From Dendrobates tinctorius (Eukaryota), in the NCBI RefSeq assembly GCF_039654945.1, contig NW_027362112.1, forward strand, positions 558,001-622,000: a stretch of 64,000 nucleotides of DNA. Direction: 5' to 3'. Of this stretch, positions 671 through 64,000 are shown piece after piece. Positions within the stretch are counted from its first letter, which is position 1. Each line of letters begins with the position of its first letter. A program made the position numbers and the translations under genes. The notes under the pieces are model-generated. The model saw only the letters and a list, made by a program, of their open reading frames with translations, was not told where the DNA came from and did no database searches.

Positions 671-1017
671 AGCCAGAGACCCCGACAGAGACACCCGATG
701 CAGCCAGAGACCCCGATAGAGACACCCGATGCAGCCAGAGACCCCGATAGAGCCACCCGATGCAGCCAGAGACCCCGATAGAGACACCCGATGCAGCCAG
801 AGACCCCGATAGAGACACCCGATGCAGCCAGAGACCCCGATAGAGACACCCGATGCAGCCAGAGACCCCGATAGAGACACCCGATGCAGCCAGAGACCCC
901 GATAGAGACACCCGATGCAGCCAGAGACCCCGATAGAGACTCCTGATGCAGCCAGAGACCCCGATAGAGCCACCCGATGCAGCCAGAGACCCCGATAGAG
1001 ACTCCTGATGCAGCCAG
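671..1017. repeat. 31-bp minisatellite (cagccagagaccccgatagagacacccgatg)n, about 11 copies, GINS3 intron 2
   Basis: Tandem unit read directly from the sequence. Confidence 0.93.
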
Positions 1018-1127
1018 CCACAGTGACGGTACAGTGTACAGAGCAGACCGCACGTCTCCGGAGAAGAGACGGAATATCAGAATCCATCCAAAATAACAGG
1101 CGTATATTGTCAGCACCAGGATAACTA

Positions 1128-58959: not shown

Positions 58960-61900
58960 CCCCTCCCCCTCTGGCCTGCTTCCCCTCCTCTTCTCCCTCC
59001 CTCTCGCTTTTTATTTCCCTCCCCCTCGCGCCCTCTCGCTTTTTCTTTCCCCCTCTCGCTTTTTCTTTCCCCCCTCTCGCTTTTTCTTTCCCCCCTCTCG
59101 CTTTTTCTTTCCCCCCTCTCGCTTTTTCTTTCCCCCTCTCGCTTTTTCTTCCCCCCCTCTCGCTTTTTCTTCCCCCCCTCTCGCTTTTTCTTCCCCCCCT
59201 CTCGCTTTTTCTTCCCCCCCTCCCGCTTTTTCTTCCCTCCCTCCCGCTTTTTCTTCCCCCCCCCTCGCTTTTTCTTCCCTCCCTCCCGCTTTTTCTTCCT
59301 CCCTCTCTCTTTTTCTTCCCCCCCTCCCTCTCGTTTTTTCTTCCCCCCTCCCTCCCTCTCGTTTTTTCTTCCCCCCTCCCTCCCTCTCGCTTTTCTTCCC
59401 CCCTCCCTCCCTCTCGCTTTTTCTTCCCCCCCCCCTCCCTCCCTCTCGCTTTTTCTTCCCCCCCTCCCTCCCTCTCGCTTTTTCTTCCCCCCCCTCCCTC
59501 CCTCTCGCTTTTTCTTCCCCCCCTCCCTCCCTCTCGCTTTTTCTTCCCCCCTCCTCCCTCTCGCTTTTTCTTCCCCCCCCTCCCTCCCTCTCGCTTTTTC
59601 TTCCCCCCCCTCCCTCCCTCTCGCTTTTTCTTCCCCCCCCCTCCCTCTCGCTTTTTCTTCCCCCCTCCCTCCCTCTCGCTTTTTCTTCCCCCCCTCCCTC
59701 CCTCTCGCTTTTTCTTCCCCCCCCTCCCTCTCGCTTTTTCTTCCCCCCCCTCCCTCTCGCTTTTTCTTCCCCCCCCTCCCTCCCTCTCGCTTTTTCTTCC
59801 CCCCCCTCCCTCCCTCTCGCTTTTCTTCCCCCCCTCCCTCCCTCTCGCTTTTTCTTCCCCCCCTCCCTCCCTCTCGCTTTTTCTTCCCCCCCCCTCCCTC
59901 TCGCTTTTTCTTCCCCCCCTCCCTCCCTCTCGCTTTTTCTTCCCCCCCTCCCTCCCTCCCTCTCGCTTTTTCTTCCCCCCTCCCTCCCTCCCTCTCGCTT
60001 TTTCTTCCCCCCTCCCTCCCTCTCGCTTTTTCTTCCCCCCTCCCTCCCTCTCGCTTTTTCTTCCCCCCTCCCTCCCTCTCGCTTTTTCTTCCCCCCCTCC
60101 CTCCCTCCCTCTCGCTTTTTCTTCCCCCCCTCCCTCCCTCTCGCTTTTTCTTCCCCCCCTCCCTCCCTCTCGCTTTTTCTTCCCCCCCCTCCCTCCCTCT
60201 CGCTTTTTCTTCCCCCCCTCCCTCCCTCTCGCTTTTTCTTCCCCCCCCTCCCTCCCTCTCGCTTTTTCTTCCCCCCCCTCCCTCCCTCTCGCTTTTTCTT
60301 CCCCCCCCTCCCTCCCTCTCGCTTTTTCTTCCCCCCCCTCCCTCCCTCTCGCTTTTTCTTCCCCCCTCCCTCCCTCTCGCTTTTTCTTCCCCCCCCTCCC
60401 TCCCTCTCGCTTTTTCTTCCCCCCCTCCCTCCCTCCCTCTCGCTTTTTCTTCCCCCCCTCCCTCCCTCTCGCTTTTTCTTCCCCCCCCTCCCTCCCTCTC
60501 GCTTTTTCTTCCCCCCCCTCCCTCTCGCTTTTCCCTCTCGCTTTTTCTTCCCCCCTCCCTCCCTCTCTCTCGCTTTTTCTTCCCCCCTTCCCTCCCTCCC
60601 TCTCGCTTTTTCTTCCCCCCCTCCCTCCCTCTCGCTTTTTCTTCCCCCCCTCCCTCCCTCTCGCTTTTTCTTCCCCCCCTCCCTCCCTCTCGCTTTTTCT
60701 TCCCCCCCTCCCTCCCTCTCGCTTTTTCTTCCCCCCCTCCCCCCCTCCCTCCCGCTTTTTCTTCCCCCCCCTCCCTCCCTCTCGCTTTTTCTCCCCCCCC
60801 CTCCCTCTCGCTTTTTCTTCCCCCCCCCCTCCCTCTCGCTTTTTCTTCCCCCCCCTCCCTCCCTCTCGCTTTTTCTTCCCCCCCCCCGCTTTTTCTTCCC
60901 CCCCTCCCTCCCTCTCGCTTTTTCTTCCCCCCCCCCGCTTTTTCTTCCCCCCCTCCCTCCCTCTCGCTTTTTCTTCCCCCCCTCCCTCCCTCTCGCTTTT
61001 TCTTCCCCCCCTCCCTCCCTCTCGCTTTTTCTTCCCCCCCTCCCTCTCGCTTTTTCTTCCCCCCCCTCCCTCCCTCTCGCTTTTTCTTCCCCCCCCTCCC
61101 TCCCTCTCGCTTTTTCTTCCCCCCCCTCCCTCCCTCTCTCTCGCTTATTCTTCCCCCCCCCTCCCTCTCGCTTTTTCTTCCCCCCCCTCCCTCCCTCTCG
61201 CTTTTTCTTCCCCCCCTCCCTCCCTCTCGCTTTTTCTTCCCCCCCTCCCTCCCTCTCGCTTTTTCTTCCCCCCCCTCCCTCCCTCTCGCTTTTTCTTCCC
61301 CCCCTCCCTCCCTCTCGCTTTTTCTTCCCCCCCTCCCTCCCTCTCGCTTTTTCTTCCCCCCTCCCTCCCTCTCGCTTTTTCTTCCCCCCCCCCTCCCTCT
61401 CGCTTTTTCTTCCCCCCCTCCCTCCCTCCCTCTCGCTTTTTCTTCCCCCCCCCTCTCGCTTTTTCTCCCCCCCCTCCCTCCCTCTCGCTTTTTCTTCCCC
61501 CCCCTCCCTCCCACTCGCTTTTTCTTCCCCCCCCCTCCCTCCCTCTCGCTTTTTCTTCCCCCCCCTCCCTCCCTCTCGCTTTTTCTTCCCCCCCTCCCTC
61601 CCTCTCGCTTTTTCTTCCCCCCCTCCCTCCCTCTCGCTTTTTCTTCCCCCCCCTCCCTCCCTCTCGCTTTTTCTTCCCCCCCCTCCCTCCCTCTCGCTTT
61701 TTCTTCCCCCCCTCCCTCCCTCTCGCTTTTCTTCCCCCCCCTCCCTCCCTCTCGCTTTTTCTTCCCCCCCTCCCTCCCTCTCGCTTTTTCTTCCCCCCCT
61801 CCCTCCCTCTCGCTTTTTCTTCCCCCCCCTCCCTCTCTCTCGCTTTTTCTTCCCCCCCTCCCTCTCTCTCGCTTTTTCTTCCCCCCCTCCCTCCCTCTCG

Positions 61901-64000
61901 CTTTTTCTTCCCCCCCTCCCTCCCTCTCGCTTTTTCTTCCCCCCCTCCCTCCCTCTCGCTTTTTCTTCCCCCCTCCCTCCCTCTCGCTTTTTCTTCCCCC
62001 CCTCCCTCCCTCTCGCTTTTTCTTCCCCCCCTCCCTCCCTCTCGCTTTTTCTTCCCCCCCTCCCTCTCGCTTTTTCTTCCCCCCCTCCCTCTCGCTTTTT
62101 CTTCCCCCCTCCCTCCCTCTCGCTTTTTCTTCCCTCCCCCCTCCCTCCCTCCTCCTCTTTTCTTCCCCCCCTCCCTCCCTCCCTCTTTTTCTTCCCCCCC
62201 CCTCCTTTTCTTCCCCCCCCTCCCTCCCTCTTTTTCTTCCCCCCCCTCCCTCCCTCTTTTTCTCCCCCCCCTCCCTCCCTCCCTCTTTTTCCCCCCCCCT
62301 CCCTCCCTCTTTTTCTCCCCCCCCCTCCCTCCCTCCCTCCCTCTTTTTCTCCCCCCCCTCCCTCCCTCCCTCCCTCTTTTTCTCCCNNNNNNNNNNNNNN
62401 NNNNNNNNNNNNNNNNNNNNNNNNNNNNNNNNNNNNNNNNNNNNNNNNNNNNNNNNNNNNNNNNNNNNNNNNNNNNNNNNNNNNNNNNNNNNNNNNNNNN
62501 NNNNNNNNNNNNNNNNNNNNNNNNNNNNNCCCTCTTTTTCTCCCCCCCCTCCCTCCCTCCCTCTTTTTCTCCCCCCCCTCCCTCCCTCCCTCTTTTTCTC
62601 CCCCCCCTCCCTCCCTCCCCTCTTTTTCTCCCCCCCCTCCCTCCCTCCCTCTTTTTCTCCCCCCCCCTCCCTCTTTTTCTCCCCCCCTCCCTCTTTTTCT
62701 CCCCCCCCTCCCTCCCTCTTTTTCTCCCCCCCCTCCCTCCCTCCCTCCCTCTTTTTCTCCCCCCCTCCCTCCCTCCCTCCCTCCCTCTTTTTCTCCCCCC
62801 CCTCCCTCCCTCCCTCTCGCTTTTTCTTCCCCCCCTCCCTCCCTCTCGCTTTTTCTTCCCCCCCTCCCTCCCTCCCTCTCGCTTTTTCTTCCCCCCCCTC
62901 CCTCTCGCTTTTTCTTCCCCCCCCTCCCTCCCTCTCGCTTTTTCTTTCCCCCCTCCCTCCCTCCCTCTCGCTTTTTCTTCCCCCCCCCCTCCCTCCCTCC
63001 CTCCCTCCCTCCCGCCCGCTTTTTCTTCCCCCCCTCCCTCCCTCCCGCCCGCTTTTTCTTCCCCCCCTCCCTCCCTCCCGCCCGCTTTTTCTTCCCCCCC
63101 CCCCTCCCCTCCCCCTCCCCTCCCCTCCCCCTCCCCTCCCGCTTTTTCTTCCCCCCCCCTCCCGCTTTTTCTTCCCCCCCCTCCCGCTTTTTCTTCCCCC
63201 CCCTCCCGCTTTTTCTTCCCCCCCTCCCGCTTTTTCTTCCCCCCCCCTCCCGCTTTTTCTTCCCCCCTCCCGCTTTTTCTTCCCCCCCCTCCCGCTTTTT
63301 CTTCCCCCCCCTCCCGCTTTTTCTTCCCCCCCCCCTCCCGCTTTTTCTTCCCCCCCCCCTCCCGCTTTTTCTTCCCCCCCCCTCCCGCTTTTTCTTCCCC
63401 CCCCCTCCCGCTTTTTCTTCCCCCCCCCTCCCGCTTTTTCTTCCCCCCCCTCCCGCTTTTTCTTCCCCCCCCCTCCCGCTTTTTCTTCCCCCCCCCTCCC
63501 GCTTTTTCTTCCCCCCCCCTCCCGCTTTTTCTTCCCCCCCCCTCCCGCTTTTTCTTCCCCCCCCTCCCGCTTTTTCTTCCCCCCCCCTCCCGCTTTTTCT
63601 TCCCCCCCCCTCCCGCTTTTTCTTCCCCCCCTCCCGCTTTTTCTTCCCCCCCCTCCCGCTTTTTCTTCCCCCCCCTCCCGCTTTTTCTTCCCCCCCCCTC
63701 CCGCTTTTTCTTCCCCCCCCCCTCCCGCTTTTTCTTCCCCCCCCTCCCGCTTTTTCTTCCCCCCCCTCCCGCTTTTTCTTCCCCCCCCTCCCGCTTTTTC
63801 TTCCCCCCCCCTCCCGCTTTTTCTTCCCCCCCCTCCCGCTTTTTCTTCCCCCCCCCTCCCGCTTTTTCTTCCCCCCCCTCCCGCTTTTTCTTCCCCCTCC
63901 CGCTTTTTCTTCCCCCTCCCGCTTTTTCTTCCCCCTCCCTCCCTCTCGCTTTTTCCCTTACCCCTCCCTCTCGCTTTTTCCCTTACCCCTCCCTTCGCTC
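58960..64000. repeat. Polypyrimidine/polypurine minisatellite (ctccctccctctcgctttttcttcccccc-type), CSNK2A2 intron 2
   Basis: More than 5 kb of almost pure C/T on the + strand, with one G per unit. Confidence 0.95.
62387..62529. other. Assembly gap (143 N)
   Basis: Run of n characters. Confidence 0.99.

Follow-up and report, generated by a model that had tools for sequence, protein, structure and literature searches.

Private minisatellites fill the introns and spacers of a conserved four-gene block in the frog Dendrobates tinctorius

Introduction

What sets the length of introns in a compact gene block where the introns of a single gene range from 80 nt to more than 9 kb? This question is raised by a window of 64,000 nt from the genome of Dendrobates tinctorius (contig NW_027362112.1; positions given here are those of the window), which carries GINS3, PRSS54, CCDC113 and the 5′ part of CSNK2A2. 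An initial annotation, made from the letters alone, had described about 13 arrays of unrelated tandem repeat units, each restricted to one intron or spacer, and had read them as pieces of tiny introns amplified in place without the help of transposons. We examined these arrays by repeat calling, exon mapping, comparison with orthologous loci in other frogs and alignment of read contigs. The observation of private arrays is confirmed, and the interpretation of local, in-place amplification of tiny introns is largely supported, with corrections. Taken as a whole, the locus is probably best explained by private minisatellites that grew in place in a compact gene block that lay near a telomere in ancestral chromosomes.

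Results

Private tandem arrays occupy most of the window

Tandem Repeats Finder (TRF) returned 99 rows, which merge into about 13 arrays or array families located where the initial annotation had placed them. The array blocks total 43,820 of the 64,000 bases (68%), and all of them lie in introns or spacers of GINS3, PRSS54, CCDC113 and CSNK2A2. Their periods are 31, 30/61, 32, 34, 21, 66 (with 33), 41, 36 passing into 40, 45, 20, 15 and 29 bp, along with a C/T-rich family of 21–33 bp. With 2 to ~500 head-to-tail copies, periods between 15 and 66 bp and TRF scores reaching ~10,000, these arrays are minisatellites. Their GC content is 60.9%, compared with 45.3% for transposons and 53.7% for the rest of the sequence, and the motifs TGGG, AGGG and ACAG are enriched 1.5–3-fold. 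Many units contain G runs and show strong strand asymmetry, with GC skew up to 0.9; a rule relating the G-rich strand to the direction of transcription was looked for across the arrays of the window, and none was consistent.

The units are unrelated to each other. When every pair of consensus units was aligned and compared with shuffles (120 pairs), relatedness was found only inside the same intron, between the 36- and 40-bp units of CCDC113 intron 6 and between the 29- and 23-bp units of CSNK2A2 intron 2. One further candidate, GGGATCTATG, common to the 32-bp and 66-bp units, was judged a chance resemblance (z 4.2 among 120 pairs). In blastn searches of each unit against the window, no match was found beyond the intron or spacer of origin.

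Sequencing reads were consulted as Logan contigs from four runs, aligned to positions 28600–33200, and their summed depth, which is not a copy number, was used only as an order-of-magnitude contrast. In a DNA run from the same species, unique sequence has a depth of ~3, and bins of the 40-bp and 45-bp arrays reach 198 and 112, or ~66 and ~37 times unique. These depths fall short of the copy numbers in the assembly (200 and 134) and are much lower than the 10^3–10^5-fold depths of neighbouring transposons; in the same run, the miniature inverted-repeat transposable element (MITE) of CCDC113 intron 5 has a depth of 2.4–3.6 × 10^5, and parts of CCDC113 intron 3 have depths of 10^3 to 5 × 10^4. 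The 40- and 45-bp arrays are multi-copy, are not a dispersed family and do not have the copy excess of a transposon-derived satellite. For these two arrays, the contig depths bear out the initial claim that the units are not dispersed.

Introns without their arrays are near minimal

Exons were mapped singly from open reading frames (ORFs), splice sites and homology (Pfam, tblastn and protein matches), and array lengths were subtracted from the introns between them. The clearest cases are two introns of CCDC113. Intron 2 measures 6131 nt, of which 6065 nt belong to a 45-bp array of 134 copies (32919–38983; 95% matches), leaving 66 nt, 25 at the donor and 41 at the acceptor. Intron 6 measures 7857 nt, of which 7791 nt belong to a 36-bp array grading into ~200 copies of a 40-bp unit (21081–28871), again leaving 66 nt, 17 at the donor and 49 at the acceptor. 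The initial annotation had proposed that both introns shrink to minimal size once their arrays are removed, and had listed repeat-free introns of 72, 80, 84, 96 and 106 nt; the exon map recovers all five, without arrays, as PRSS54 intron 4 (72 nt), CCDC113 introns 4 (80 nt), 8 (84 nt) and 7 (96 nt) and PRSS54 intron 1 (106 nt).

Other introns follow with somewhat larger remainders. CCDC113 intron 1 (9258 nt) contains a 20-bp array (TATATAGGGGGTGCAGA; 39356–48376) in four blocks separated by three insertions, and ~237 nt remain without arrays and transposons. GINS3 intron 1 (1807 nt) holds ~50 copies of a 32-bp unit (1679–3250; 1572 nt), with 122 nt left at the donor and 113 nt at the acceptor (235 nt together). 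GINS3 intron 2 (878 nt) holds a sharp-edged array of 11 31-bp copies (665–1017; 96% matches) and a 30/61-bp array (1141–1321) that begins 10 nt past the donor, leaving 344 nt. In PRSS54 intron 3 (3984 nt), 56 copies of a 66-bp unit and 4.5 copies of a 33-bp unit (14160–17976) leave 172 nt, on the donor side. CSNK2A2 intron 1 (2138 nt) carries 65 copies of a 29-bp unit (56614–58518), starting at intron nucleotide 9, and a 46-bp duplication described below; ~187 nt remain. CSNK2A2 intron 2, which begins at 58856 and runs past the window, is filled by the C/T-rich family with 21-, 29-, 33- and 23-bp units (58983–63994). The sole N run of the window (62387–62529) lies inside this array, with the unit variant CCCTCCCTCCCTCCCTCTTTTTCTCCCCCCCC on both sides; since the gap is within an intronic array, it affects no exon or reading frame, only the array length.

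The characterization of the introns as tiny holds for the five small ones and passed over three of intermediate size. CCDC113 introns 3 (2246 nt, with dispersed-repeat fragments) and 5 (1102 nt, of which a 714-nt MITE leaves ~388 nt) were enlarged by transposons, and PRSS54 intron 2 (1548 nt) contains ~16 copies of a 21-bp unit (12885–13224; 340 nt) along with ~1.2 kb of unclassified sequence.

Two intergenic arrays are near start codons. A 34-bp array of 95 copies (3743–6979), with 184-nt higher-order duplications, lies ~200 nt upstream of the GINS3 ATG, and a 15-bp array of 504 copies (48684–56257) separates the divergent starts of CCDC113 (ATG at 48497) and CSNK2A2 (ATG at 56502). Over its 7.6 kb between these two divergent promoters, the 15-bp array holds 123 CpG per kb, and it includes an exact internal duplication of 2246 nt. 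A 41-bp array of 13 copies (19815–20353) starts 20 nt downstream of the CCDC113 AATAAA signal (20378–20373, minus strand).

Arrays adjoin splice sites that are correctly used

Because the ancestral introns were tiny, the arrays adjoin splice sites. The initial annotation held that they never enter an exon, which is nearly so, with two small exceptions. In PRSS54, the 33-bp array stops at the acceptor of intron 3, and TRF extends it 5 nt into exon 4; a perfect two-copy duplication of 46 bp (58658–58749, plus strand) copies the CSNK2A2 intron-1 acceptor together with the first 6 nt of exon 2. The duplication creates an identical predicted decoy acceptor 46 nt upstream, whose use would shift the CSNK2A2 reading frame.

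Copying of an exon–intron junction into a unit is seen at the acceptor in this duplication and in the 33/66-bp arrays, where the 33-bp units of PRSS54 intron 3 reproduce the pyrimidine tract and CAG acceptor, the last unit being the real acceptor. The 66-bp unit is in turn a dimer of these 33-bp units (24/33 identical; score 15 vs. a null of 1.7 ± 2.3). Likeness to a donor junction is suggestive in the 61-bp GINS3 array, whose unit resembles the exon-2/donor junction (GCTGCAGG...), and in the 29-bp CSNK2A2 array, and a junction copy was not found in the units of the 45-, 40-, 20- and 32-bp arrays. In most arrays the unit comes from sequence inside the intron or spacer and not from a splice junction.

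The 40-bp units of CCDC113 intron 6 hold hundreds of donor-like GGTGAG motifs. A 1038-nt RNA contig nonetheless joins CCDC113 exons 3, 4, 5 and 6 at the mapped sites on the minus strand, skipping 2246, 80 and 1102 nt between GT..AG borders. Loose ends at 28889 and 32879 carry the start of exon 7 and the end of exon 2, respectively. Since these ends read into exons 7 and 2, both large CCDC113 arrays are spliced out at authentic sites despite the GGTGAG motifs.

Arrays grade into their own flanks and contain exact multi-unit duplications

Each unit was compared with its own 70-nt flank and with the flanks of the other arrays. Seven of the 13 arrays match their own flank much better than those of others (z 3 to 12) and fade into degenerate monomers. 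Among them, the 30/61-bp array of GINS3 intron 2 has an own-flank z of 3.2, the 32-bp array of GINS3 intron 1, which has a degenerate monomer in its flank, a z of 10.2, and the 21-bp array of PRSS54 intron 2 a z of 12.3. The 41 nt between the 45-bp array and the CCDC113 exon-3 acceptor begin as a diverged monomer, and in CCDC113 intron 6 the older, 34–36-bp units lie at the acceptor side of an array that also has 526-nt higher-order duplications. The initial proposal that pieces of introns were amplified in place stands for the seven arrays that grade into their flanks and for the 33/66-bp arrays that copy the PRSS54 acceptor region; it does not extend to five sharp-edged arrays without a visible source.

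Exact multi-unit duplications of 184, 460, 526, 362 and 2246 nt occur inside the arrays. They fit out-of-register exchange better than single-unit slippage, and assembly error could also yield them.

In a related species (run X12), contigs 95–97% alike end at the same two CCDC113 array edges. Unique sequence in this run has a depth of ~9 and the array bins reach 78 and 310, or 9 and 34 times unique, with a fixed difference inside the 40-bp unit. Since both large CCDC113 arrays are seen in this species, they predate the split of the two species.

Orthologous introns are short or carry other arrays in other frogs

If arrays arose within short introns, orthologous introns should be short or contain different arrays, as the initial annotation had predicted; this is what Spea and Pristimantis show. 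In Spea bombifrons (GC 53.5%), where the block lies 2.2 Mb from the end of a 41.8-Mb chromosome, the eight CCDC113 introns measure 3954 (with a 41-bp array of 95 copies), ~115–147, 82, 1219 (with a 40-bp array of 27 copies), 142, 411, 308 and 159 nt, and further private arrays are present in the spacer, in GINS3 intron 1 and in NDRG4. In Pristimantis euphronides (GC 47.7%; 3.6 Mb from the chromosome end), CCDC113 introns 6–8 measure 315, 100 and 213 nt, PRSS54 intron 3 contains a 20-bp array of 48 copies, and GINS3 intron 1 contains a 41-bp array of 59 copies that copies its own exon-1/donor junction.

Several kilobase-scale introns of D. tinctorius are 82–411 nt in other frogs. CCDC113 intron 2 is 6131 nt in D. 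tinctorius vs. ~115–147 nt in Spea, and intron 6 is 7857 nt vs. 411 nt in Spea and 315 nt in Pristimantis. Conversely, CCDC113 intron 4, which holds the 40-bp array in Spea, is 80 nt in D. tinctorius. The same genes carry different units in different introns in each frog lineage, which is array turnover.

The two pipid frogs differ. The Xenopus tropicalis locus (Chr4, 75.81 Mb of 154 Mb; GC 38.9%) has no arrays, and its GINS3 introns measure 2722 and 871 nt. The Hymenochirus boettgeri locus (130.05 Mb of 276 Mb; GC 40.4%) retains a single decayed 41/56-bp array with 60–70% matches, and CCDC113 introns 7 and 8 measure 1409 and 1892 nt. GINS3 exon 1 is present there in three copies (10001–10162, 11530–11691 inverted, and 21173–21334, numbered within the Hymenochirus locus), each beside decayed 41/56-bp array sequence. 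Either the segment was duplicated or the assembly is at fault; as a result the annotated gene spans an inflated 22.8 kb.

The orthologous block lies near a chromosome end in Spea and Pristimantis and near an old fusion in pipids

An ancient end-to-end fusion of elements D and E in pipids has been placed at 76.61 Mb of X. tropicalis Chr4 and at 132.0–132.3 Mb of H. boettgeri Chr4 (PMC10794172, Suppl. Table 8). With CM004446.2 and CM033472.1 assumed to be Chr4 from their place in the accession series and their length, the X. tropicalis locus is 0.78 Mb and the Hymenochirus locus 1.9 Mb from this junction. Because the pipid loci adjoin the D+E fusion, the block was near a chromosome end in the frog ancestor and became internal in pipids. 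The X. tropicalis linkage map gives 0.09–0.14 cM/Mb around the locus vs. 2.4–4.2 cM/Mb at both ends of Chr4. At the internalized pipid loci the GC content is 39–40%, arrays are absent or 60–70% decayed and introns are longer.

A subtelomeric or high-recombination setting had been suggested for the window from its repeats. The distal positions in Spea and Pristimantis are consistent with such a setting, and from these orthologues we infer that the D. tinctorius window is likewise subtelomeric.

Transposons form a smaller layer of growth

Arrays account for ~44 kb of the block and transposons for ~10 kb, so that array growth is four to five times larger. The view that growth was independent of transposons is supported for this dominant part; it fails for CCDC113 introns 1, 3 and 5 and for the GINS3–PRSS54 spacer, which transposons enlarged.

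The spacer contains a Tc1/mariner element (approximately 7560–11560, plus strand) with a helix-turn-helix domain at 7593–7769 (Pfam HTH_Tnp_Tc3_2) and its remainder at 10720–11553, interrupted by a nested long interspersed nuclear element (LINE) on the plus strand with endonuclease (7821–8360; Exo_endo_phos) and reverse transcriptase (9487–10299; RVT_1) domains. Together with the 3.2-kb array, this Tc1 and nested LINE account for the enlarged spacer. The head-to-head spacer measures 8.3 kb in D. tinctorius (3541–11891) vs. ~170 nt in the Ranitomeya annotation and ~280 nt in Pristimantis, and a bidirectional GINS3–PRSS54 promoter has presumably been pulled apart.

The MITE of CCDC113 intron 5 (29270–29983; 714 nt) has 57-nt terminal inverted repeats, and with a summed depth of ~10^5 times unique DNA in two species it ranks among the most abundant elements in both genomes. 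In CCDC113 intron 3, fragments of dispersed repeats (31064–31371 and 31988–32757) have depths of 10^3 to 5 × 10^4 in all four runs.

Three insertions split the 20-bp array of CCDC113 intron 1. A retroelement-like fragment (40478–41392) has an (ATT)n tail and, at 40843–41400, no Pfam match; to judge from its ending, it may be a LINE tail. A Tc1 element (about 41896–43120) is flanked by a TA duplication, as is a Tc1/Sleeping Beauty-like element (44968–46575) whose 132-nt inverted repeats are 99% alike. The two Tc1/Sleeping Beauty-like elements of this array (44968–46575 and about 41896–43120) have uninterrupted transposase ORFs of 340 and 330 aa, respectively, and look recent from their sequences, and the one at 44968–46575 could be a candidate for a still-active element. 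The TA-rich 20-bp unit supplies the Tc1 target dinucleotide. Since the transposons were inserted within the array, the array is older than the insertions, and its four blocks are one array. Transposon remnants border none of the arrays in the window; what flanks the arrays is exon, splice site or unique intron sequence.

Gene models of the block

Gene order and orientation, GINS3–PRSS54–CCDC113–CSNK2A2, are presumably those of the human locus. The GINS3 (PSF3) coding sequence, from ORFs and splice sites, lies on the minus strand (223–3540; exons 3540–3373, 1565–1332 and 453–223). Its exon-2 ORF matches frog GINS3 proteins at 81–96% identity (best Ranitomeya variabilis, 96%), and its length of 56 + 78 + 76 = 210 aa equals that of orthologues. 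CCDC113 (20498–48497, minus strand) has nine coding exons, at 48497–48394, 39135–39009, 32877–32713, 30466–30308, 30227–30147, 29044–28889, 21031–20924, 20827–20672 and 20587–20498, with a coding sequence of 1146 nt (381 aa) that contains the Pfam domain CCDC113_CCDC96_CC. The 5′ part of CSNK2A2 (56502–64000, plus strand) comprises the coding part of exon 1 (56502–56605) and exon 2 (58744–58855).

A PRSS54-like inactive serine protease is encoded on the plus strand (11892–18498; exons 11892–11931, 12038–12176, 13725–13987, 17972–18084 and 18157–18498), identified by Pfam Trypsin and by tblastn to the Pristimantis gene. A stop codon that seemed to lie in frame in exon 4 had raised the possibility of a pseudogene. 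This was rejected, as the stop came from reading in the wrong frame, and the proper one gives matching splice phases and an intact gene. The protein has GTGGSP in place of GDSGGP at 18157–18180 and so lacks the catalytic serine, as in the inactive PRSS54. Its stop codon is immediately followed by AATAAA. PRSS54 is present between CCDC113 and GINS3 in D. tinctorius, Ranitomeya and Pristimantis, and no PRSS54 exon was detectable between these genes in the Xenopus, Spea and Hymenochirus loci, which suggests lineage-specific loss or relocation.

Discussion

How short introns would become kilobase-scale arrays

We propose that a compact, GC-rich block of four conserved genes would originally have had introns mostly of ~70–400 nt and spacers of a few hundred nt. 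About 13 independent minisatellites would then have been seeded by short local sequences, often immediately next to a splice site given the small size of the introns, and each would have expanded in place to 0.2–7.8 kb. Growth most likely proceeded by out-of-register recombination, whether by unequal crossing over, gene conversion or double-strand-break repair, in a region that was probably recombination-rich and ancestrally near a telomere, and we infer that meiotic recombination was the driver. Selection would retain the exons with ~10–25 nt after the donor and 40–50 nt before the acceptor, leaving the remaining intron free to expand, and the arrays would leave as ordinary intron RNA. They would also turn over, such that frog lineages come to differ in units and introns for the same genes, while transposons (Tc1, LINE and MITE) would add a second, smaller layer of growth and insert into the arrays themselves.

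Several observations weigh against this account. High G+C alone accounts for part of the TGGG, AGGG and ACAG enrichment. For five sharp-edged arrays (those of 31, 34, 41 and 15 bp, and that of 29 bp in CSNK2A2 intron 1), the flank comparison revealed no local source. Genome-wide uniqueness was checked for the 40- and 45-bp arrays only, by summed contig depth, which is not copy number. Array lengths come from one assembly, in which exact kilobase-scale internal duplicates are possibly errors and one array is gapped. In Xenopus, GINS3 intron 1 is 2.7 kb long and made of non-array DNA, which means that ancestral introns were not necessarily all tiny. Finally, the chromosomal and recombination setting is read from orthologous loci and not from D. 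tinctorius itself, and the pipid contrast is a single locus in frogs that differ in many other ways.

Alternative origins of the arrays

The alternative that survives best, which we nevertheless regard as unlikely, is that replication slippage or mitotic break-induced repair in the germ line expanded GC-rich, structure-prone units; meiotic crossover and position would then be irrelevant, and the link to chromosome ends indirect, through GC content or replication timing. The G runs and GC skew of up to 0.9 in many units agree with it, runs of identical adjacent units fit stepwise slippage, and Bredeson et al. state that their own data on frog subtelomeres cannot separate cause from effect (PMC10794172). 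Exact duplications of 5–150 units, however, are hard to obtain by slippage of single units, the AT-rich 20-bp array expanded too, and arrays decayed where the block became internal with low recombination, in pipids.

It is distinctly less likely that some or all arrays expanded from a piece of a dispersed transposon. Such an origin is documented for subtelomeric minisatellites in frogs, for example the SINE (short interspersed nuclear element)/tRNA-V minisatellite of Xenopus (PMC10794172); transposons do occur in the window, and it could account for the five arrays that lack a local source. Against it, the depth of the 40- and 45-bp arrays does not exceed their own copy number, seven arrays grade into unique flanks and none is bordered by transposon remnants, and the units resemble neither one another nor the transposons of the window.

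Retention of the arrays for a function, as protein-binding clusters, CpG-island-like promoter spacers, splicing timers, or G-quadruplex or R-loop elements, is quite improbable. Two arrays do lie within ~200 nt of start codons, the 15-bp array between divergent genes reaches 123 CpG per kb and both large CCDC113 arrays persist in the related species, but at the same introns units, positions and presence are wholly different between frog lineages, no strand rule relative to transcription is consistent and splicing ignores the arrays. That the arrays are largely assembly artefacts, over-expanded or mis-joined, is very hard to credit: the gap inside one array and the exact 2246-nt and 526-nt duplicates are suspicious and short-read contigs cannot size arrays, yet independent runs and a second species give multi-copy depth with contigs that break at the same edges, the arrays show ordered variant gradients and transposon insertions with target duplications, and comparable arrays occur at orthologous loci in three other assemblies.

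Relation to known tandem repeats and meaning for intron evolution

In-place growth of private minisatellites at this locus belongs to a phenomenon already described in frogs. Frog subtelomeres are long, GC-rich and recombination-rich, with lineage-specific tandem repeats enriched in TGGG, AGGG and ACAG, for which growth by unequal crossing over has been proposed and whose signatures fade close to old fusions (PMC10794172, 2024). The D. tinctorius arrays resemble these extended-subtelomere repeats in high GC content, motif enrichment and lineage specificity, so the view that the dominant structure of the window is unexplained cannot be kept. That study is at chromosome scale, does not mention introns and stresses shared satellite families and transposon-derived units; in contrast, the D. 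tinctorius units are private to one intron or spacer and make up nearly all the length of otherwise minimal introns, in a window whose subtelomeric place we deduce from orthologues. In humans, variable number tandem repeats (VNTRs) with >60% GC and units >15 bp show a 21-fold enrichment in the terminal 5 Mb of chromosome arms; many of these VNTRs are intronic, and they have been ascribed to faulty recombination (Linthorst et al. 2020, PMC7608644). Human VNTRs are scattered in long introns and form a small share of their length, whereas the D. tinctorius arrays occupy 68% of the 64-kb window and as much as 99% of individual introns.

In the paper on the D. tinctorius genome, the growth of gene size is credited to transposons, and tandem repeats go unmentioned (Dittrich et al. 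2024, PMC11152451). CCDC113 introns 1, 3 and 5 and the GINS3–PRSS54 spacer share this transposon-driven growth. The block as a whole, with ~44 kb of arrays vs. ~10 kb of transposons, follows the opposite local rule, in that private tandem repeats contributed four to five times as much as transposons to the growth of genes with near-minimal introns. Particular to this locus are the density of the arrays, the privacy of one unit per intron, the near-minimal size of the ancestral introns, and comparative evidence that arrays turn over and depend on position.

The comparison across frogs provides a natural experiment on the question of cause and effect that Bredeson et al. could not resolve: the same genes carry fresh arrays near a chromosome end, and decayed ones or none where an old fusion has placed them in a chromosome interior with little recombination. 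The arrays also set hundreds of decoy splice sites beside real ones, and CCDC113 introns 2 and 6 are still correctly spliced; with 66 nt of unique intron each, these two introns mark in nature how little intron sequence suffices. Assemblies will break such loci or get their length wrong, and repeat annotation that relies on transposons will under-report them.

We tentatively extend this picture, as a possibility we hold with less than even confidence, to distal, recombination-rich domains of frog chromosomes, where the length of introns and spacers may be set mainly by the birth and death of private minisatellites in near-minimal introns and not by transposons. At this block such a regime may have lasted ~200 million years, from the comparison of Spea with neobatrachians, and may have been switched off in pipids by fusion to the chromosome interior. 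If true, this would constitute a second, position-dependent and transposon-independent axis of amphibian gene-size evolution, one that transposon-centred analyses have missed.

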